Below are positions 9,701-22,045 of a stretch of 64,000 bases of DNA, in pieces. Source of the DNA: Pavona decussata (lineage: Eukaryota); assembly GCA_977016875.1 (NCBI GenBank), contig CDRNST010000015.1, forward strand, positions 3,038,001 through 3,102,000, in the 5' to 3' direction. How positions within the stretch are numbered: position 1 is the stretch's first letter; every line of letters starts with the position of its first letter. Below the pieces are notes generated by a model. That model had not been told where the DNA came from and did not search any database. It saw only the letters and a list, made by a program, of their open reading frames with translations. A program made the position numbers and the translations under genes.

Positions 9701-12700
9701 TGCTCTAGAGCATTTTCTGTATTCTGTTTCTATAACAAAGTCATTTTGACTCAACATATTTTTGCAAACTTTAATAAAGATGGATCTTCATTCAAGCATA
9801 AATAGATGTAAGTTATAAACTTACCAATCTCATTCCTACATAGCTGTGCTCTCCATACTGATCTCCAGGTTTGTCAAATGGAAACGAACCATTGTAACCA
9901 CTTAAATATCCTGCAAATGCTATTGACATCTGTTGCACAGAGAATGTAGAAAAGAGGGTTTAAAACAATAAAATAAAGGCATATGTCTTGTGGGGGTACA
10001 CAGTGTTCCAGATAACTTTCAAAATCCGAGAGTCAACGAACAATTTTTGAGGGTTCAATACAGGTGTAGCTCTGGTTCTCTCTAAATCTTCTTAAGTTTG
10101 CCATTCATTTTGTTGGGTCAGGAAGCCAGGCTTCTTGGGTTTTTGACCTGAGACCCCTCTCTTATCTGGAACACTGGTATAGGTAGTGTAGTGGTTAGCA
10201 CATTAGACTTTTCTTCAAACTTTCAATACAAGATCGGTGGGTCTGATGGTTCAAGGCTAGGCTGATCTCTGCATTACAACTGACAATGCATAGGCCAACC
10301 TACAACTGTAGCCTTGTACCGCTGGACCCTCACATTGTCCTTCTCCCCCTCCCCCTCCCCTGTTGTAAATGGTACTGGTGATAAAATGTTAGGGTAACCT
10401 TACAGTGTACAAGCCTTGAGCACCATCCAGGGAGGCTTGAAGCATGAAGCTTGGGCAGTGTCAGGGCTATCTAGGACTGAAGTGAGACTCTCACTATTAC
10501 AGGACTTCTGATAGGGTGCGGAAAAATTTTGGAAATTATGCGGCACTTTTGAGTCTCATTATGCGGCAAAAAGGTCTATTATGCGGCAAATAATGCGATT
10601 TCATTTTAGCTAATTTAAGCTTGTTTTATTAGGTCTAAGAGGAGCACAATCCATTTTTTGCTGTTCAAGAGGCAATTATATTAGAGCCAGAGAAATGAAG
10701 AAACAGCTGAAATAAATTATTTGTTGCCTCATTTCAAATTATTGAAAATCAGATATTGCTAATTTGGTCAAGTCAGCGTTTGTTGCTTCCCACCAGCATT
10801 TTTTTTCTGTGTTCCGCTTGTGTGACTCAGCTTCAAGGTCACAAACGTTCGAAGATGATCAACCACTATGTTGCACAAAGAGCAACAGACCATCGTCAAC
10901 ATGAAACGTTCCTTCAGGGTACTTTTTTGCCCTGTCTTTCACCGAAACATTTACAGGAAAGTGCGATCTTTTTCTCTCCTGCGAAGAAGTGCTTAGTGTA
11001 ACAAACTTATCCATAATGAGGATGTTTGTTTCAATAATTATTAAAACAAAATAACTACATATTGCAAGCGACTATCGAGCAGTTTACATCGTAAGTATGA
11101 AGGGATCAAATGACATCTTAACAATATATCAATGATTGTGATTGGTGTATTTACATAAAAGGATTGTTTATTCCGTGTCAATGATCACTCGCTTAATATT
11201 GAAAACCAGCACCAGGTCCCCAACATGTAAAATGAAGCATAGAACGCCTGTTTGTTCACTTGTTCAATGAACGAACGCTTCCAGGTGATTTTTGACGCCT
11301 TTTGAAAGAAAAAACTCCTTGAGATAATGTTGAATTAATAAATTATCAGAGAACTTGACATTAAGTGAGATTTTTGCTTTTTTTTTTTCTTTAATTGTGT
11401 GATTTTGTACAAATTCTGCGATTTTTCATGAATTATGCGATTTGTTGCGATTTTAGGTCAATTATGCGAAATCGCAACATCGCATAATACCAGAAGCCCT
11501 GACTATAAGGCAACTTTTTGTTTACCTTAGCTAACGGTGGGTGAACATCGAAGAAGAACTCTCCCTTAATGTACCAATTTGCATGCTTTCCAAAATGAGT
11601 TTCATCCCAACTGCAAGAAGAATACAACAGAGTTTGCACCTGTTTACCTTGGCTAATGGTGGATGAACATCAAAGAAGAACTCCCCCTTAAGGTAAAAAT
11701 TGGCATGTTTTCCAAAATGTGTCTCATCCCAGCTGCAAGTACACAACAATATTAGCACAAAAATTGCCTTCACATACATTTTCCCTTTCAGACTTACATG
11801 TATAGACTGAGTCAAATTTAAGATAAAAATTTGGCTGCTCCCAATTTCTTTCTTATTCACTTTTTGATGGGAGCCCACCCCACAATATTATATCACAAAA
11901 TCTCAATACTCAAACAATCACAGGAAAAAAACTGCTTGAGTCTACAAAAGTTCGAGTTATCAGGAGTAAAGGTTTGTTAGTTACTTTATAATTTGAAATG
12001 AAAGGCAATTTTTGCCCCCAGGATGAGTGTTGTCCAGGGATAAAAAAAGCTGTTTCATTTACGTAAATACATGTAGCTTCATCACAGGATTCCAAAACTA
12101 AGACTTTAGTTAGTAATCTTGCGCAAGATGAATTTCATCAAAAGAAGACTGCTAAATACTCTCTGTCAAAGATGAGAAAAACACAAAACATTATAAACTG
12201 GCTGAATGCTGTTTTGTTATATATACAGTGTATTTGCTGTAAACACTTTTTTCCCTTACTGATGTATTTTCCTCTCCCAAGCCTTATTTAATTAGCAGAG
12301 CTCTATAATCAGTTTTATAAATTCTACTTCCCCCCATTTTAGTAACTGCACATAGGTAGTGGCCAACACAAAAGCCTTGCTCCTTTGGCCACTATGCACT
12401 TCTTCCCTAGAAGGTAAAACTACTTAAATATAATGCTCTGCAAGTTTTTTTTCTTACCATAAAAATATATTGTATTTCGAATAAGTGTGAATAAAAATTG
12501 AATTGAATTGAATTGAATTGTGGTTCTTTGGGCTAAAATGTTAATTACTGCTCCAAATAATCATAATTGCAATTCGAAATTAAACAATGTTTAAGATTAA
12601 TATTATTGAAAGTTTTATCCCTAGCAGGGAGACTACATGGACTTGTTTGTCGCATTTCATCCTAGGATAGGGCTAAAATGTTAATTACTGCTCCAAATAA

Positions 12701-15700
12701 TCATAATTGCAATTCAAAATTGAACAATGTTTAAAATTAATATTATTGAAAGTCTTATCCCTGGCAGGGAGACTACATGGACTTGTTTGTCGTGTTTCAT
12801 CCTAGGATGACATTTCATCCCAGTGGTTTGGACACCGGGATTAAATCATCCTTGGATGAGCACATGAAACTTATCTAGTCTCAGGACAAGATCTTAGCTG
12901 GCCCCCATCAATAAGATGATGGTTAGCTTCTCTAGCTTCTGGACGTGAGTTGTTTTGTACAAGATGAGGCCTATTCTCAGGTGAAGCTGTGATCACTCTT
13001 GTACACAAGAGAAAGCCTTAATTCCTCGCAAAGCGAGGGCCGAAGGCCCGAGTGTAGCGAGGTTAATAAATTTGTCGGGCCGAAGGCCGCGCTCGGGAGC
13101 CAAGCCGTGCGAATTCGAGCCGAACATATATTTATATATATGTATGTTTATATATTTCCGTGAAGGTGTCCGTGCTGCAGTTGCCTGGCAACAGTGCGCA
13201 AACAAAGTATGAATGACGACAGACTGTCTGGCGTTGTCTGAAAAAAATTTGCATACATCGGAAAAAATATGCGTGCATGATCAAATTTCAACTGCAATGT
13301 TCATCAATATTCACTGGATACAGAACTATCTCTCCAGAATCTTTTCCCTTTCTTTTAGAAATCTTTTTTGTGAAAGATTGAATTGAAGAAATTATACGTT
13401 TTGTGGCCGCGGTAAAATAATTTTCCGTGGGAAATAAATTCATCGAACACGACAGCGCTGCACGCCTGTTGTACATTACGTCGCGTCAGAAATAGATTTT
13501 CAACCGCAGAATGACGTCAGACTGTCTGGCGTCGTGTGGAGCAAAATTTGCATACGTCGGAAAAAATATGCGTGCATGATCAAATTTCAACTGCAATGTT
13601 CATCAATATTCACTGGATACAGAACTATCTCTCCAGAATATTTTCCCTTTCTTTTAGAAATCTTTTTTGTGAAAGATTGCATTGAAGAAATTACACGTTT
13701 GTGGCCGCGCTAAAATAATTTTCCGTTGGAAATAAATTCATCGAACACGACAGCGCTGCACGCCCGTTGTAGATTACGTCGCGTCAGAAATAGATTTTCA
13801 ACCGCAAACTAGCCTGTGGAACTAACAAAAGACCATGCTCATAAAAAAAATTCCTATGCCCCTTTTAATCTCCTCATTTGATGCTACAGTACGAGTAAAG
13901 AGGGTTTTCCACCCAGCCCCAGCTTCGCGAGGTTTTGCGAGTCACGTATTTCTAGTTAGTTACATGTAGTAACAGGGCTTTCCATGCAAACTATCATAGT
14001 GGCACCATGAAGATTCATAGCTATCTTGACATTTTCAATGTGTAACACATCACTGATTTAGATGGCTGATGAAGGAAAAATGACTTATATGCTATAAGTA
14101 TTTTGAAACAAAAAGTATCAAATAATTGTAAAGAAATTAGAAAAATTTACATCAAAACATGTGGATCTACAAGCTACAGTTGTTAGTGTCAACAAGGAAG
14201 AGAGGCAAAGTGCAGTAGGGTTGCAGTACCAGCTAAGTAAACAGACCACCAAAACACTTGAATGCTTCGGTAAAGCTAACAACAGGTGGTTGTGTTTATA
14301 GAAAGGTGGGTAGAACGTTCTTGAAATTTAAGCTTACATTGGCCATTCAAATCTGGGCAGAAAACAAGAGACCGGATTATCCTACAAAAATAACAAAATA
14401 TATTTTGCAGATAATTTTACTGATTGATGGACTAGGCTAAGAAAAACACAAAGTTATTCCCATCAAAATTGCATTTGATCAATAAACCGCCGAGAACTGG
14501 TTAATTTGCATGGCGTCTAGAAACTACGGCTATCAGCTTCGTTAGTTTAAGATAAGGAAATAATTATAAAAGACGTTTTTCTGCTTCGTCCTTCATGATC
14601 CAGTATTGAAATATTGTAAAATTTGTCTCATTGAAATAAACCAAAACTTGGTTTTAAAACAATGATAACAATCCTCGTTTTTTTCAATTTAATCAGATGG
14701 CTCTGGATTGTATAAAGCTTATATAAATTCAAATCAGTTTCAAAATGGTGTCACAGTTGCTACACAACCATGCAAACATAACAAACTGCAAACTATATCT
14801 CCATATTTAATAAAGCCCTGGAAATTCTGAAATATCACAGTCTGCAACTTCGATGATGTCAAGTACAAATTTGTCTTCTAGCCTTCCAATCGATGGCCAA
14901 AACTCAATCAAGATGTGAAATATTTTGCAGAAATTGACATGCATACATGTAAGCTTAATTAAGCTTCGCATCAGACGTTCAAACCACTTGCAGGTCAACG
15001 TTTTGCCATCCAAACCGCTATTCTTTGAAAGAACCTTACCATATATGAGTCGGTTCGTCGATTCCGTAAAACCTTGTGGCAATAGTCAGTAGTAATAGGC
15101 CTCCAAAAGCTCCAAGCCGGCCGAAAACCTTGGGGTTCCCTTTCACCACTTCGTACGATGTCGCCATACTTGATCGAGATCCGTCTTTATTCGCTCGCGT
15201 TCTTTTCGTAGAAGATGGCATTTCGGACTCACTATCACTGTGTTTATCCTGCTTTTTCGTTCCTACTCCTTTTCGTGGTGTCATGATTATAATTTTAAGT
15301 TATTTCGCGGAGCTTTTCTCGTAAATCTTCCTTGCCGTGCAGCGCCCGCGTGCAGCTTTCGAACGGACGCTCTCGGCCCAGACCCTCCACTCCCAATGAT
15401 TCGCTCTGACGAAGGCCAAACGCGCGAAACGTCGGCATATTTGGTTAGCACTCGAATCTAGTCTGGATCTCTTTACAGAGGCAAAATTCATACCTTCAGT
15501 TATCAACTCTGTCGGCGAAACCAAACATTCGTTTCTAATCCCCAATGACCGAGCACCGCAGTTTCTTTAGAGACCATTAAACCCCCTTTTCCTCAACTTC
15601 TATGGCCGGGCTATACACCGTATTCACAAATGGCGGATGCGCGGGAAAAAAACTGGCACTAGGCATCAAAACGAGGCGTTTTAGGATAAACAAAAAATAA

Positions 15701-18700
15701 TTTGCGTGCGAGTACAAGTTCACAGAGAGACTATTTAGCTGATAAGCTCCTAAACAGCAAGTTTTTCAGATCGCTGGTTTTATTCCGAACGAGAGTGGTC
15801 TAGTGTTTCTTGGATCGTTTCTTGTTGCAATCGTAAATGCAAAATAGACAATCACGGAAACAAATCGGTTAGAGTTTTTGTTTCCGAAGGATTCAGCTTT
15901 CGAGCGCGGACGATAGAGATACAATGTACTACAGAAGTTTGTTTGGTATGTCTTTCGGAATCCGAAGGTAAGATAGGTCTTGAAGGAAACAAAATGAACA
16001 TACAAAAGGATGCATTTCTAACGAGAGTCGCGTGATCAACTTCGTATCGGACGTTGGCGTTCCGAGCGCAAGAGAGACTACAACCATTTGCCTAAACCGC
16101 TATAATGCCAAGAAAAAAAAAAAGACGAAGACAACAACGAAAAGACGTGAAGGATGTGGAGAGAAACGGCTGGACGAATAATTTAAAAAGAAGCAACAGA
16201 TGAACCAAGACTTGTCTGTTTCGATTTATTTGTATTGTAGCCGTACTGTAAACAACAAGCAGAGAATGCAGTCCCTCAAAATTCATAATTTGTTAAATCA
16301 ATCAAGTCAGCAAAATCCAACCGGCTGTTTAATAATGGAACAAGCTCAGAAGGATCATTTCTTGCCTGAATGAGAAAATTGTATTCCGTGAAACAAGGGC
16401 TAGAGAACACAGCATTGTGGCTTTTTAACCGGCATTTCGGTTGAAATCAATAAAGATTTGCATACTTAATTAGGTAATTTGTCAGAATTAGATTATCGTA
16501 TTTCGCTTTACATTGGGTTCCTAAACTTGCCATTCCTTAACGCATTTGAGAGTGACATTCCTCAATTTCCTTGCAGGATTGTTTTCTTAAAATTGATACC
16601 TTACTTCCAGTAGTTCCTCTTGACTTTGGTAACTGCCACATTTTCAATGACTTGCATGAATCTTGGCCAATCTTGCGATGCATGATATCTTTTTTATTTC
16701 GGGGAAAAAGCGCCTAAAAGGTACCGAAATATTTAAGTCTTGGCTCACATATTGCTTCCTTAGTTAAACTTTTTTTTCAGTAGCTTCCCTCCACCTCCTT
16801 TTGTTTTCGTTTTTTAGGCATTAGAGCTGTTCACAATAGTAGGAGTCGGTTTTTGTAGCTTTTGTGATCGGAACTTCCGATTAGTAATCACCACGCAACC
16901 TTCTTTGGAACTGCGTCCGTTTGTAGATTCATTTTCTTTCCTTCGAAACCTGTTTTAATTCCCTTTCCAAAAAATGCATTGAATAAACCTTTGTGGCTCC
17001 TGCTAGAGTGAAGATCTTTCTAACAACTTTTCATATTTTCTGTAGACATTACACTCGAAGGTTTGAAACAAACAATCTAACTCAGTTTTTTCCTGTGAGT
17101 GTCTAGTTTGCATTTGAGATTGCTAGAAGAAGCCAACCAATAAATAATAAATACTAGAAGTTGAACTCGTTCGGACTAAGTGACCAGAAGGACTCAATTT
17201 TTAGAAAGTCAGCACTTATCGACCCTCTAGAAGCTTACATTCTCTGCATTCACTGGAAATTTTTTTTGTTTATCCTAAAACGCCTCGTTTTGATGCGTAG
17301 TGCCAGTCTTTTCCGCGCGTGTCCGCCATTTGTGAATACGGTGTATAATGACTTTTATTTTCGTTCATTTTTCATTTTTTTTCTTCGTTCAAGTTCATCT
17401 TCTTTTTGAGGTTTGTGTTGCAAACCGAAATATTGGGCTAATTTGTTATAATTTATTTCAGTTGTTCTAGTCACTTTGTTTATTTTTCGCCACCACCGCC
17501 GTTAGGATTAGTCTGCCGTTGCATATGAAATGCTGGATTTTTTCTGTAAACTTTGCGGGAAAGCAGAACAACATGCAGCAGGATAAGGCAGGTAGAAGAT
17601 TTCAAACACTGCCCTCTCTCGGCTGATAAAAAAACTTACGCAATCGTATCATCCTCAAGGCCTATTCATGTGATCCCGATCAACCAGGGATGGCAGGCCC
17701 AGTCGAGAGTCTCGCCTCACTACCCAGCCCGGTCAAAGTACAGCTCGGTAACCGCGCGAAGCGATTCAACTGATTAACGTATAATTGGCCTTTAAAAGTC
17801 TTCGACGCTGATACTGACACTGCCAAGAACTTGGAGCGGTGGAGATGGCAAAACCTCATGTGGACCAGTTGACTGATGATTTCGACAAACTTTTAAGAAT
17901 CGCTTTCAGATTTCCCATATTATGAACAGAAGACACATTTCCCCACTAATTAAACTGGGCCAGCACGGTTAACATGTACTGGCTCATGTGAAGAGTGCCT
18001 TAACTAGAAATGTTTCAGACTTATTTGAGCGCGCACGAATTGAGCGTTAGCTCACTAGCTCCTCTGTTGAAAGAAAGTTCTGAATAAGTGTCACGGGAAT
18101 GATAACTTTTGCCATTGAAATGTTTCGTACGACAAGGCCAAGGTAATTCTGAGTTACAAAATGGTAAACGTCCTTTATCTTTTTTGACATTAATTTTACT
18201 TATTTCCTTAATTTACCGTTACCTTTAACACATACACATCATTAAAAAGGAGGAATGATCACGTCCTCGCCACAGATACAGTCAAACTTGATCTTTCTGA
18301 GAAAGATCATATTTGACCGTATCTCCGGCTAAAGCCAGTTTCAAACAATAAAAATATGACCGTGGCGAAAAAAGCTTCATGCTAGCCATTGTATTATGCT
18401 CAGTTCTAATGATATTTTTTCCGTAAGACGAAAGCCCCGTAGTAGAGCAGTAAAAAAGATTCCCCTTCAGGAATCATCACCTTCGGGCGCGGATCATTTC
18501 GTCCAAGGCGACCCGGCATTGTCGGATTTCACCTTGCAGATGAAATTGCACCAGAAGACCGAGTGACGTTTTTTTTCAGTTCACGCTTTTGAATCAACGC
18601 CAAATGGATTTGCAGTGGTGACTTAAGTTTTAATCACGATCAAATGCGACTTCCCTTCGCCCTAGCATGTGCCATAGAACAAGAAGATGTACAGTCGACT

Positions 18701-20981
18701 CCCGATAACTCGAACCTTCAAGGGAAATTGAAAAAGGTTCGAGTTATCGGGAGTTCGAGTTATCGAGGGTAAAATTATATAGAAAATGACCTGAAAGGAA
18801 AGGAAAATTGGTTCGAGTTAGCGCGAGGTTCGAGTTAGCGAGGGTTCGAGTTATCGGGAGACGACTGTATATAACGAAGCTATCCCTTCTGGATTTTCTC
18901 GGCTACTGAAGACAACAAACATTACAAGCTGGGTGTTTTTGAGGTCACGTGACGAAAACTTAACACGATACCAAACTGCTTGCTAAGTTTCGAGAAAATT
19001 GGAAGCATACTTCCCTTTCAAGTCAAAGTCTTTTGTGTTTAAGGCCTTTCAAGTGAAAGTATGCTAAATTACCAGCAAAGTCAAGCTTATTTTAGTTGGG
19101 TGGTTGTATTTTTCCCATATGGAACATGAAATCCAGATTCAAAATGATATTGAATCTTCGTGCACTAGACTAAAAAAGGAAATCTGATACTCTTGATCAT
19201 CATTGCTTAATGTTTGTTTTGAATTTTGCGTGATATTTATATCTAAGGATCCTCGGTGAAAAAGAAAGACCAATTTTGTCTTTTTAGAAATCTGTTCCAT
19301 ACCAAAAGAGAACTCAACATAAAATTTACCAGTTGTTAACCGTCCTTCGCGTCCGATAAAAAGTGAACTATTCGAAGGTTTTCCCTCATTTCGAAACTCG
19401 CTTGATAGGATTCCAGTCTTGTTGGTTTGGAGCACTGTGCATGTCATAATTTTGGCACACTGAGTTTCAACCATTACGTATACATGACTTGCGGCAAATT
19501 TCCCGTCATAAACTTGAATAGCCCTTTTTCTTGCTATTACGTGTGAGCTGATTCAGCTTGAGACACAATAAAAAAGTAAACGTCGATGGCGATAATCAAG
19601 TTCAAAGATACTATTTCGTGGTAATATTTTATAGAATTTGTCACCTTGCCAACTTCAAGTATTCTTCCACCAGAACACTAGTTTTTCTACACAGAACTGT
19701 TGACGTAAGAGAGGGCAATTTTCACTGTCTTTTTCTCGTTTTGCAGTCTTTTGTGGCGGTCTTTTGACTGTCTTTTGACATTTCAACTGTTTAAACGAGT
19801 CAAACATAATTTATTGTACCCTTTGCTATTCTTATTGTAGATCGCGAGACTAATTTATCAATTGTATTATTGCACCTGGACTTCATTACTAACAGAAGTC
19901 TGAATCGTTACTGGTATTTTTCTATCCTTTTTCGTCTTGAGAGCGAAACTTTTATCTCTACCAGCTTGGCTTAAAAAAAAATTGCTCCTATCTTGTCGTG
20001 TAAGTGCCGATAAAAAGGCATTCAAAGTCTGTCGAGTATTAATTTTTTTAAATGCGCAAACCGGAGGTAGTTGGTGGTAAACTGCTTTGTCTTGTAAGCG
20101 GTATCTTACCACAACGCACTGCGGGAAATTTTTGTAAGGTCATCAGTATAAGAGAAATCTGCAATATTTCGGAATGTTTCAAGGTACAAAGAATACGTTG
20201 AAATGTCATATGCATTATAACAAGACTGCCGCGGGTCTAATGTACCTTTCTGGCACCTAAAACCTAGCCAACCTCATCACGCAGCTGGTTAATAAAACAA
20301 AGCCTTGATCTATGATGAGCCAGGTAACTTTTTGCTAGAAGTAATTCATTAAGAACTTTAAATTTTCAGCATTTTGCGTGTCAAAAACGATCAATGTGGA
20401 CAGCGGAATTAAAAGACGTGTGTTAGGCTTCCTGTTTTATAAACCCTAAAATATTCTAGGTCTGAGAAGAAAAAGTAAGGTCGGTAAGATTATCGGAACT
20501 GTAATAAACCTTTTGTAGTAGACCAATGAATAATTGATACGCCGACTAAAATTAACAGACATTTGCATGGAATATTATGATTATGTACTTACCAGATGTG
20601 CGTCGGAAAGCTCACGTTGACAAATCTCGTGGCAAACGCAAGCCCCACAGCACAAAAGAACGACATCAATTTTATCACCCAAGGAGTTTTGCCATTATTA
20701 ACAACTGACAGCCACTTTGAGACGAGCGATTTATGCTGCTCCTTCCTGCTCGGCGGTTTAGTCTTAAGAACAGCCCTTTTAAGATCGGCTTTAGTTCTGT
20801 TCGGCGCCTTGACGGTCTTTCTGTTCCGAACATCGCCGTTTTGATGCTTTTCATCCTGTACTGGTTTTGTTTCATTCTCCTTTTCGCTCGTCTCTCTGCC
20901 GTTTTCATGTAAATCGTCGTCTTTTTTGACATCGCCGTTTTGTTGGCCATTGTTTTCTTCAGCACTCACTTCCGATCCCAT
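653..20981 (-). CDS. POMT2: Protein O-mannosyltransferase 2, 5' part; multi-exon, continues beyond the left edge of the window
   Basis: Manually spliced GT-AG exons with consistent phases: alt exon 1a 20593-20981 or 1b 15040-15284; alt exon 2a 11648-11732 or 2b 11526-11610; then 9825-9929, 8734-8842, 8370-8478, 7817-7882, 7113-7206, 3851-3957, 3170-3252, 2586-2695, 1243-1309, 653-713. Translation has the POMT2/PMT2 hallmarks [48 protein letters not shown], and the start of the MIR domain ([32 protein letters not shown]). Confidence 0.96.
1243..1309 (-). CDS. POMT2: POMT2 exon 11 ([22 protein letters not shown])
   Basis: tag|...|gtaagt, 67 nt, phase 0-1. Confidence 0.92.
1790..1940 (+). mobile_element. 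Degenerate tRNA-derived repeat/SINE fragment
   Basis: tagctcagtggtcaagc (A box) ... gggtttgactc (B box-like) at about 1834-1887; no intact cloverleaf. Confidence 0.55.
2586..2695 (-). CDS. POMT2: POMT2 exon 10 ([37 protein letters not shown]; start of MIR domain)
   Basis: tag|...|gtaag, 110 nt, phase 1-0. Confidence 0.93.
3170..3252 (-). CDS. POMT2: POMT2 exon 9 ([27 protein letters not shown])
   Basis: cag|...|gtttgt, 83 nt, phase 2-1. Confidence 0.92.
3851..3957 (-). CDS. POMT2: POMT2 exon 8 ([35 protein letters not shown])
   Basis: tag|...|gtaagt, 107 nt, phase 0-2. Confidence 0.92.
4363..4475 (+). repeat. 37-bp tandem repeat x3 (ttcagaaagcacgaaagcacattcgaaagcaccagta)
   Basis: Seen directly; lies in the 5' leader of the THAP ORF. 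Confidence 0.9.
4476..4710 (+). pseudogene. Frameshifted THAP zinc-finger N-terminus of the transposase
   Basis: [28 protein letters not shown] / [34 protein letters not shown]: THAP C..C..W..CSxHF signature, split by a frameshift near 4605. Confidence 0.8.
6260..6814. mobile_element. Tc1/mariner-type MITE with TA TSD, containing a nested hairpin MITE
   Basis: ta|ccgtccgttgcatctaagcgtg ... cacgcttagatgcaaccgatgg|ta. Confidence 0.75.
6320..6479. mobile_element. 160-bp palindromic MITE with TGT...ACA ends and 4-bp TSD (caaa); Ginger-like ends
   Basis: Near-perfect ~65-bp inverted arms; caaa at 6316-6319 and 6480-6483. Confidence 0.75.
7113..7206 (-). CDS. POMT2: POMT2 exon 7 ([31 protein letters not shown])
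   Basis: tag|...|gttggt, 94 nt, phase 2-0. Confidence 0.9.
7817..7882 (-). CDS. POMT2: POMT2 exon 6 ([21 protein letters not shown])
   Basis: tag|...|gttggt, 66 nt, phase 2-2. Confidence 0.88.
   Translation of the reverse strand, partial: PIQFSLVGLDDCFRNVFILCI
8370..8478 (-). CDS. POMT2: POMT2 exon 5 ([36 protein letters not shown])
   Basis: cag|...|gtaagt, 109 nt, phase 1-2. Confidence 0.93.
8734..8842 (-). CDS. POMT2: POMT2 exon 4 ([36 protein letters not shown])
   Basis: tag|...|gtaagt, 109 nt, phase 0-1. Confidence 0.93.
8894..9172 (-). mobile_element. tRNA-derived SINE, near full length
   Basis: Head ggcgcagtggtgagagc...ggttcaattccc, body ccaacatttccaaattccaattcga, (ttta)n tail; 12-bp TSD cacacatttgta at 8882-8893 and 9189-9200. 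Confidence 0.85.
9488..9583. mobile_element. Short TAGCC...GGCTA hairpin MITE
   Basis: TIR tagcctgtgagcaggct / agcctgctcacaggcta; imperfect 9-bp TSD tccctaatg / tccctaaat. Confidence 0.7.
9825..9929 (-). CDS. POMT2: POMT2 exon 3 ([35 protein letters not shown])
   Basis: cag|...|gtaagt, 105 nt, phase 0-0. Confidence 0.93.
10180..10470 (+). mobile_element. Degenerate tRNA-derived SINE
   Basis: ggtagtgtagtggttagc head, ggttcaagg B-box-like, body tgtaaatggtactgg...gggtaacct...catccagggagg. Confidence 0.5.
10500..11501. mobile_element. Non-autonomous hAT-like element ending 24 nt from the exon 2b donor
   Basis: TIR caggacttctgata / taccagaagccctg, repeated subterminal attatgcg motifs; imperfect TSD (actatta / actataa). 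Confidence 0.6.
11526..11610 (-). CDS. POMT2: POMT2 exon 2b (85 nt; [29 protein letters not shown])
   Basis: Acceptor ttcttcttgcag; donor AAG|GTAAAC; phase 2 to 0; 72/85 nt identical to exon 2a. Confidence 0.88.
11648..11732 (-). CDS. POMT2: POMT2 exon 2a (85 nt; [29 protein letters not shown])
   Basis: Acceptor tacttgcag with upstream gctaat branch-like motif; donor AAG|GTAAAC; phase 2 to 0. Confidence 0.9.
12530..12809. repeat. 140-bp tandem duplication x2
   Basis: gggctaaaatgttaattactgctcc... at 12530 and 12670. Confidence 0.9.
13018..13956 (+). mobile_element. Helentron/Helitron-like non-autonomous element with an internal ~298-bp tandem duplication (13211-13807)
   Basis: 5' hairpin cctcgc-aaa-gcgagg, complementary 3' subterminal gcttcgcgagg, terminal ctagt; the internal duplication is seen directly. 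Confidence 0.6.
15040..15284 (-). CDS. POMT2: POMT2 alternative first coding exon 1b (81 codons + 2 nt; short cytosolic tail, TM1, ATRF...PTHI)
   Basis: In-frame TAA 6 codons upstream of the ATG; ends CAT ATA TG|GTAAGG (phase 2); encodes ...[19 protein letters not shown]. Confidence 0.9.
15400..15590 (+). mobile_element. Penelope-like element fragment with a degenerate minimal type I hammerhead ribozyme motif (15403-15436)
   Basis: gct-CTGACGA-aggccaaacgcgc-GAAA-cgTC-ggc, followed by ttatcaactctgtcggcgaaaccaaa...gcaccgcagtttctttaga as recalled for cnidarian Penelope-associated repeats. Confidence 0.6.
15612..17347. mobile_element. 1.7-kb non-autonomous DNA transposon with ~85-bp TIRs, between POMT2 exons 1a and 1b
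   Basis: tatacaccgtattcacaaatggcgga...aaaacgaggcgttttaggataaacaaaaa and its reverse complement at about 17260-17347; superfamily uncertain (Academ-like ends). Confidence 0.8.
18692..18867. mobile_element. pogo/Tigger-like MITE with TA TSD
   Basis: ta|cagtcgactcccgataactcgaacc ... ggttcgagttatcgggagacgactg|ta. Confidence 0.85.
20593..20981 (-). CDS. POMT2: POMT2 alternative first coding exon 1a (129 codons + 2 nt; long cytosolic tail, TM1, ATRF...PTHI)
   Basis: aaacATGg start; ends CAC ATC TG|GTAAGT (phase 2); encodes ...[16 protein letters not shown], matching the POMT2 TM1/loop-1 junction. Confidence 0.9.
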
Positions 20982-22045
20982 GTTTGTTAGATAATCATCG
21001 GCGTAAAAGCGACAAACTTCGGACAGGTTATTTTGGCCGCCAAGCGCGGAAGCAAAGACTATCCACGTCGCGGTTGTCTTTTATTTCATTTAAATTCAAA
21101 ATTACACGTTAACATTAGTTTACGATCACTGTATGATGACATTCCATGGGGATCTCTTTCATGTCTCCATGGTTACTGTGCCAGGCAAGCGTTTGCCCTG
21201 CGCTTTCTATCTTTTTGGGAATACACAGTTTTAATAAGAAGGGTCTGTTGCCATGGCCACGAACGTCCCCATTTTAAAGAAACGAGAAATTCTATAGTTC
21301 GGCAGTCTTTTGAATCAAAATTATTTTGGACAGTTTATTTAGCTTTTTCTGAGACAAGGACCCTCTAAAGGACCACCTTCTTCAAAACTAAGGCCCTGCG
21401 TAAATTTTAAGAGACCTGGTGGAAAATGCTTCTCACCGCTTCTGTTTCTCTAAATTGCCGAGTTTTGTGTTTTTCTTCTTTTCGTTGTTTATTTTAGTAT
21501 TTATTTTTTCTTTTTGACTTTGTTCAGCCGTTTGTCATTTGCCTGCGTTGATCTGTTTTACCTACTCCGACGAATTTCCGGGTTTGTTCGCGCATTTAAT
21601 TATGGGACCGTTTGAAGCGTGCGCACTGGAGGTATAAATGTACAACCTCGTTCCCAGGTTTAACCCTTGTAAATTTATTGGAAGGGGCGCCCCTCCCAAT
21701 TTACAAGGGTTAAACCTCTGGGTCACCCAACGGCTCACTTCCGTGATGGTGGATTATGAGTTTGCGATCGGAAATTCGGATCTTAAGTTGTAAAGAACTT
21801 GAAATCTGCGCTTTTCTTCAGCAAAATTTCTGCTAAAAAATTTCGTTACAATGGAGAACTAATTCCGTTCGTTTTTGAAGGGACAAATACGTTGTTAAAA
21901 ATGTTAAAAAAGGCCAGCAAGAATTTTTCGCATAACCAAAAACAGCTCGTTTATTCAGGGAATAAAATTCTGTTTCCAAAAACCTTTTTGTCAGCTAAAG
22001 CACCCAAACAGATATGAGCTCTCACAAATATGTCTTAAAAGCCCC

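Follow-up and report, generated by a model that had tools for sequence, protein, structure and literature searches.

A coral POMT2-type gene with two paralogous first coding exons, each probably under its own promoter

The DNA analyzed here, hereafter called the window, is a stretch of 64,000 nucleotides (nt) from the coral Pavona decussata (assembly GCA_977016875.1, contig CDRNST010000015.1, positions 3,038,001 to 3,102,000), and it carries on its minus strand the 5' part of a POMT2-type gene. According to our analysis, this gene very likely has two first coding exons that are paralogous to each other and mutually exclusive, a distal one designated 1a and a proximal one designated 1b, each of which is most likely transcribed from its own promoter. 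Two POMT2 isoforms would result, with the catalytic body in common and with a different cytosolic tail, a different first transmembrane helix (TM1) and six different luminal residues ahead of the catalytic loop.

The coding part of exon 1a occupies 20593..20981 (minus strand) and comprises 129 codons plus 2 nt, which encode, after the ATG, a Lys/Glu-rich cytosolic tail of ~100 amino acids (aa) and TM1 and which end in a final TG that leaves the exon in phase 2. Its 5' splice donor, gtaagt, lies at 20587..20592 (minus), and its GT occupies an identical codon position in every locus compared. Exon 1b, with its coding part at 15040..15284 (minus), is built in the same way from 81 codons plus 2 nt, with an ATG, a tail of ~50 aa, TM1 and a final TG in phase 2, and is followed at 15034..15039 (minus) by the donor gtaagg, of which GTAAG is present in all loci. 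Accordingly placed on the minus strand are two open reading frames (ORFs): the first, 20981-20592, opens with M-G-S-E-V-S and closes with P-T-H-I-W, the exon itself ending CAC ATC TG/gtaagt, while the second, 15284-15039, opens with M-T-P-R-K-G and closes with the same five residues, the exon ending CAT ATA TG/gtaagg. In both ORFs the final W codon consists of the exonic TG and the G of the GTAAG donor. A sequence-only reading made earlier on this DNA had described two first exons with their own ATG, with these lengths and with a common phase-2 end, ATRF-x5-PTHI-TG/GT, all of which the minus-strand sequence confirms.

Both 1a and 1b have their own ATG and their own 5' donor, lack a usable acceptor and have their splice phase in common with exon 2, and each is single copy in the 602-Mb assembly. 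Their starts are separated by 5.7 kb. An in-frame TAA stands 6 codons (-18) before the 1b ATG, and 1b is therefore not an internal coding continuation of 1a, as the earlier reading had argued when it stated that the two could not be in one ORF. Given this stop and the lack of an acceptor on either exon, one transcript is expected to start with only one of them.

Judged from its sequence, the locus is the 5' part of a single POMT2-type gene of the PMT2 subfamily, the 3' part of which lies beyond the window. Exon 2a (11648..11732, minus, 85 nt) encodes W-D-E-T-H-F-G-K with the catalytic DE motif and matches PF02366 with E 3.9e-8. Exon 2b (11526..11610, minus, 85 nt) is a tandem copy of 2a located 37 nt downstream, and exon 3 (9825..9929, minus, 105 nt, phase 0 to 0) continues the PMT domain; both match PF02366 as well. 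Together with two later exons, these three match the Pfam PMT family above the cut-off, with E values from 4e-8 to 1e-11, and along positions 23-219 of the profile the downstream exons match in collinear order. P0089, a fish-like protein of POMT2 type and full length, has its exon-by-exon match at this locus alone, a second PMT gene being found on a different contig, and the protein signature of the locus presumably resembles that of human POMT2. In exons 2a and 2b, W-D-E-T-H-F-G-K follows directly upon a split Cys codon, of which the TG of either first exon would supply the first two bases and exon 2 the last, giving the conserved Cys of H-I-C-W-D-E. We infer the splicing of 1a and 1b to exon 2 from the compatible phase, from the invariance of the TG and from the fact that P-x-H-I leads into the catalytic loop.

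The two first exons are also related to each other. A BLASTP comparison of 1a with 1b returned 9/15 identities (E 1e-5), corresponding to the common A-T-R-F-x5-P-T-H-I end, and alignment of the orthologue profiles by hhalign covered 33 columns, namely TM1 and the first luminal residues, with a probability of 97% and E 3e-11. No similarity between the 1a and 1b tails was detected in this profile-profile comparison, and the exons are paralogous over their last 33 residues only; the earlier reading, too, had described the tails as unrelated. As to the ancestral state, the fish N-terminus was compared with each profile; only TM1 and the loop matched, over 24 columns for 1a and 16 for 1b, which favors neither exon as the ancestral one. 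In a maximum-likelihood tree of the 33-residue segment, one branch with support 99/96 separates all 1a from all 1b sequences, the same two species sub-clades recur inside the 1a group and inside the 1b group, and there is no sign of gene conversion. The duplication therefore predates the sampled corals. The profile homology, the well-supported split and the presence of both exons in both coral sub-clades agree with the ancient duplicated first exon that had been proposed.

The loci compared with the window derive from 7 other ENA assemblies (L001-L007 and L021, with L003 and L004 both taken from the same assembly) and from 7 metagenome contigs (L008-L014), 4 of which are long enough to hold both exons, two of these being nearly identical. 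The earlier reading had called for a search for both exons in other Hexacorallia: among the corals compared they are present, and the order 1a, 1b, exon 2, exon 3 is kept, in all 11 contigs long enough (L001-L006, L008, L009, L010, L013, and L021). In L007, 1a and 1b are followed by a long terminal repeat (LTR) retrotransposon in the intron before exon 2, seen as a 1315-aa reverse-transcriptase/integrase ORF at L007:13436-17383; because of this element, exon 2 is not reached within the 10-kb flank. A word-based peptide search, the searches being run exon by exon, identified intact ORFs in 16 clusters for 1a (48-93% identity) and in 10 for 1b (56-99%). With a profile of 1a, 41 clusters (90% identity) were recovered, all with E <= 4e-41 and all extending from M-G-S-E-[VIM]-S to P-x-H-I-W, and a scan of the JGI metagenomes with the same profile gave 7 loci, all genomic. 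The contig Ga0126343 comes from the coral metagenome of Cyphastrea sp. 2 (10.1101/391565), and its 1a falls in the sub-clade farthest from the window. Cyphastrea belongs to the Scleractinia, suborder Vacatina.

No locus departs from the ATG, from the GT donor or from the TG at the exon end, the reading frame is likewise preserved, and the check for stops and frameshifts in relatives, which the earlier reading had also suggested, found all exons intact with a single exception. In L017:331-513, from a Logan contig of SRR26849146, 1a lacks 14 nt, and this deletion eliminates the second Q-N-G-D motif and causes a frameshift. The remaining sequences of the 90% cluster are intact, and the deletion may reflect either a genuine null allele or a mistake in assembly.

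Between the 1a donor and the 1b ATG there are 5308 nt in the window but 0.5-2.9 kb in the other genomes, the shortest distance being the 462 nt of L009. With as little as 462 nt in L009, there is no room for further exons between 1a and 1b. The interval in the window contains 91-nt inverted repeats at 15612-15702 and 17257-17347, which are 91% complementary and 1554 nt apart and look like the ends of a DNA-transposon insertion; the wider spacing would be due in part to the insertion of this element with its 91-nt inverted terminal repeats.

Both exons are under purifying selection, tails included. Pairwise Nei-Gojobori ratios of nonsynonymous to synonymous substitution rates (dN/dS) fall between 0.09 and 0.41 in the tail of 1a and between 0.11 and 0.46 in that of 1b, at dS values that range from ~0.17 for the closest relative to >1, where synonymous sites are near saturation. 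Since these ratios are well below 1, both tails are deemed to be translated and constrained.

In blastn comparisons between distant genomes, only 1a, 1b, exon 2, a block directly upstream of each first exon and one short intronic element could be aligned, the alignable upstream DNA extending over 100-280 nt before 1a and 30-100 nt before 1b. The block upstream of 1a (21050..21256, minus), a candidate for the 1a promoter and 5' untranslated region (UTR), can be aligned across the 9 genomes compared, without exception, and also in L021, even though synonymous sites are close to saturation. It holds the near-invariant elements TGGAATGT, (C)ACGTGTAATTTTGAATTTAAAT and [GA]ACGTGGA, the second of which includes a TATA-like TTTAAAT ~110 nt before the 1a ATG. 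We take the core of the third to resemble the core of the unfolded protein response element bound by XBP1/ATF6, which would be suggestive for a glycosyltransferase of the endoplasmic reticulum (ER). The block upstream of 1b (15285..15388, minus), the corresponding candidate for the 1b promoter and 5' UTR, is conserved across distant genomes and GC-rich, reading CCTGGG..CGAGAGCGTC..GCACGCGCG, with AAAACTC[CT]GC ~25-35 nt before the ATG, followed by the in-frame TAA already mentioned; no TATA-like element was found in it. The intronic element, 36 nt long and conserved in each of the 10 genomes aligned (14743..14778, minus), lies ~260 nt downstream of the 1b donor and reads GGTTGTGTAGCAAC..TGAC[GA]CCATTTTGAAAC, with blastn high-scoring segment pairs in L002, L005, L006, L008, L009, and L013; its right half presumably resembles an RFX X-box half-site. 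An Rfam search of 14900-21500, which includes both upstream blocks, returned no family match.

A separate conserved non-coding block directly before each exon, in an interval that is otherwise unalignable between distant genomes, plausibly fits two promoters and lends indirect support to the two-promoter arrangement that had been suggested for this locus. The distal promoter of 1a would be TATA-like and very strongly conserved, and the proximal promoter of 1b TATA-less and GC-rich. The best surviving alternative, which we nevertheless consider very unlikely, is that a single promoter upstream of 1a serves both exons through alternative 5' splice sites, in which case skipping of the 1a donor would leave 1a as a long upstream ORF (uORF), with 1b either reinitiated or untranslated. 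A read-through exon of this kind is physically possible where 1a and 1b are only 462-1200 nt apart, as in several genomes, and the 1a donor is indeed weak in many species: T occurs at its position +3 in several of them (GTTAGT, GTTGGT, GTTCGT) and the 1b donor is always GTAAG, so that the splice site of the distal exon is consistently the weaker of the two. However, a uORF of 130 codons would largely block translation of 1b, the tail of which is under purifying selection; a separate conserved non-coding block stands right before 1b; and in the window 1a and 1b lie 5.3 kb apart, with a transposon-like insertion between them.

Even less credit is given to the idea that only one of the exons serves POMT2 and that the other persists as a small gene in its own right, the product of which would be a micro-protein of 82 or ~130 aa that crosses the membrane once and ends at or just after H-I-W. 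Both ORFs do stop at the donor or within ~20 codons after it (up to ~70 in one contig), and the databases yielded unspliced forms only, but these entries are genomic contigs rather than transcripts. Moreover, the position of the GT and the terminal TG are invariant whereas the read-through after H-I-W is not conserved, and with the conserved T-R-x-x-x-x-x-x-P-x-H-I end the PMT catalytic loop begins, an end that has no obvious reason to persist alone. That one exon might be a pseudo-exon, the decaying relic of an old duplication, is effectively refuted by the comparative data, since apart from the 14-nt deletion of L017 everything is intact (41 clusters for 1a, 10 for 1b, and all 11 related contigs with both), dN/dS is well under 1 although dS is saturated, and neither the start codons nor the donors vary.

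Some observations weigh against two alternative first exons on separate promoters. The weak 1a donor of many species and the frameshifting deletion in 1a of L017 are two of them. The profile of observed to expected CpG marks neither upstream region clearly. Among the 1a and 1b proteins and contigs recovered from databases, none contains H-I-C-W-D-E, all being genomic and showing H-I-W with read-through into the intron, and spliced fragments were not found among the 1a and 1b protein hits or the members of 10 of their clusters. Likewise, an exhaustive search of representatives, with an internal exon of 52 aa as the query, detected no full-length coral POMT2; its yield consisted of fragments, of giant repeat proteins judged spurious and of a single fish-like protein 640 aa long.

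The tails themselves carry several conserved motifs, although searches of PDB and Pfam with the 1a and 1b exon peptides returned nothing meaningful. All 1a sequences that could be read from the ATG start with M-G-S-E-[VIM]-S, which fits, as a pattern match only, the N-myristoylation pattern. The PROSITE-type pattern for this modification is G-{EDRKHPFYW}-x2-[STAGCN]-{P}, which calls for Met-Gly at the start and for Ser or another small residue at position 6. Two Q-N-G-D-V-basic motifs are also present in the 1a tail, and the 1b tail features M-T-P-R, which is invariant, and D-K-x-S-D-S-E-S-E, an acidic cluster of Ser residues that is conserved. We regard M-G-S-E-x-S and the Q-N-G-D-V-basic repeats of 1a, and M-T-P-R and the acidic Ser cluster of 1b, as the stronger candidates for functional motifs. 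The sequence-only reading had instead singled out RxR-type motifs, a class of Arg-based motifs that can act as ER retention signals, in both tails and an NVS sequon after TM1 in 1a only. Both RxR motifs, VRNRK and KRTRA, are present in the window. However, conservation is limited to that of 1a, which is kept as [VLI]-R-[NSK]-R-K in all 41 clusters, whereas other species have E-S-T-R-Q, S-R-K or E-G-E-R-E in place of the K-R-T-R-A of 1b. Similarly, the sequon is found in the window and, as N-x-S/T after the 1a TM1, in most species, but it has been lost in two lineages, one with N-V-A and the other with S-L-T. It lies 3 residues past the Arg that terminates TM1, which is probably too near the membrane for efficient glycosylation.

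Exons 2a and 2b constitute a second duplicated N-terminal coding module of POMT2. They are 84% identical, and inclusion of both would shift the frame, so that in this pair, as in 1a/1b, joint inclusion is incompatible. They measure 85 nt each with a spacer of 37 nt, and they occur as two copies solely in the window and in its closest relative L001 among the loci compared, exon 2 being single copy in the others. The 1a/1b pair, by contrast, is found in every genome sampled, which makes the 2a/2b pair by far the younger of the two. On the other side of the first exons, the upstream flanks of 1a hold an ORF with a CCDC32 domain and/or an ORF for a PrmA/MTS-type methyltransferase: L001 has both, L004 and L021 have only CCDC32, and L005, L006, and L007 have only the methyltransferase. 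Synteny thus extends to the neighborhood, and the POMT2 locus truly has its 5' edge at 1a. Two POMT2 introns contain short repeats with the unit GTTCGAGTTATCGGGAG (18720-18872 and 11933-11978), which are probably fragments of a dispersed repeat.

If two alternative first exons are indeed used, the difference between the two POMT2 isoforms would extend to the six luminal residues that directly precede the P-x-H-I-C-W-D-E catalytic loop. One isoform would expose on the cytosolic face a tail of ~100 aa with M-G-S-E-x-S, the two Q-N-G-D-V-basic motifs and R-x-R-K, and the other a tail of ~50 aa with M-T-P-R and an acidic Ser cluster resembling sites of CK2. Our preferred hypothesis is that both tails govern regulation, dimer contact or the access of Dol-P-Man (dolichol phosphate mannose) at the cytosolic side, instead of mere retention in the ER. 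A more far-reaching scheme, which we put forward as speculation and hold to be rather doubtful, sees POMT2 of stony corals as having a two-state N-terminal switch, maintained from a time before the sampled lineages split, between a TATA-driven and possibly stress- or stage-regulated 1a form, the long basic tail of which could be N-myristoylated, and a housekeeping 1b form. In such a scheme, the short 1b tail, acidic and phosphorylatable, could dock in the positively charged Dol-P-Man pocket or alter the pairing with POMT1, the exchange of TM1 and of the residues before the DE motif could retune catalysis or substrate choice, and combination with exons 2a and 2b could yield up to four catalytic-loop variants in this genus.

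To our knowledge, POMT1-POMT2 is the sole PMT-type O-mannosyltransferase of animals, and the role of the cytosolic N-terminus and TM1 of POMT2 is poorly understood. A natural pair of N-terminal modules on one catalytic body would offer a ready comparison for the study of dimer contact, Dol-P-Man access, localization and turnover. For the annotation of coral genomes, both 5' exons should be modeled as separate isoforms, neither merged nor dropped.

Arrays of variable first exons are familiar from UGT1A and the clustered protocadherins, where each first exon has its own ATG and donor, is without an acceptor and presumably has a promoter of its own. The coral POMT2 gene would follow the same principle, with paralogous first exons that join common exons in the same phase and provide different N-terminal modules. 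It differs from those systems in having two members and in the nature of the module, which is the cytosolic tail and TM1 of a multi-pass ER glycosyltransferase and which stops 3 residues before the catalytic DE motif, the use of two promoters and the splicing being predicted from the DNA. We know of no previous description of paralogous alternative first exons in the PMT family, of which coral POMT2 would be a well-conserved new example.

In mammals, Lommel, Willer and Strahl (Glycobiology 18:615, 2008) reportedly distinguished a somatic form, sPOMT2, from a testis-specific form, tPOMT2, under a title that gives the somatic form alone as crucial to in vivo activity. These two isoforms, too, reportedly differ at the N-terminus as a result of alternative starts of transcription, so that N-terminal isoform diversity in POMT2 would not be new in principle; unlike the coral arrangement, the testis form is reportedly an N-terminal extension of one and the same protein and not a swapped duplicated TM1 exon.

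The closest structural comparison is offered by the fungal enzymes. PMT proteins have a cytosolic N-terminus followed by transmembrane domain (TMD) 1 and a luminal TMD1-TMD2 loop with the invariant DE motif (PMC12705809), and coral POMT2 is expected to resemble yeast Pmt1-Pmt2 and fungal Pmt4 in fold and topology. The yeast and fungal Pmt enzymes differ from it in having one N-terminus each, alternative exons being no subject of that work (PMC12705809). The coral tails are without detectable sequence similarity to these enzymes. In yeast Pmt1-Pmt2, the N-terminus of Pmt1 has been reported at the dimer interface, and a positively charged cytosolic Dol-P-Man pocket is filled by the N-terminus in the scPmt4 model (PMC12705809). 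By analogy, the dimer interface and the Dol-P-Man pocket are plausible points of action for the two coral tails.

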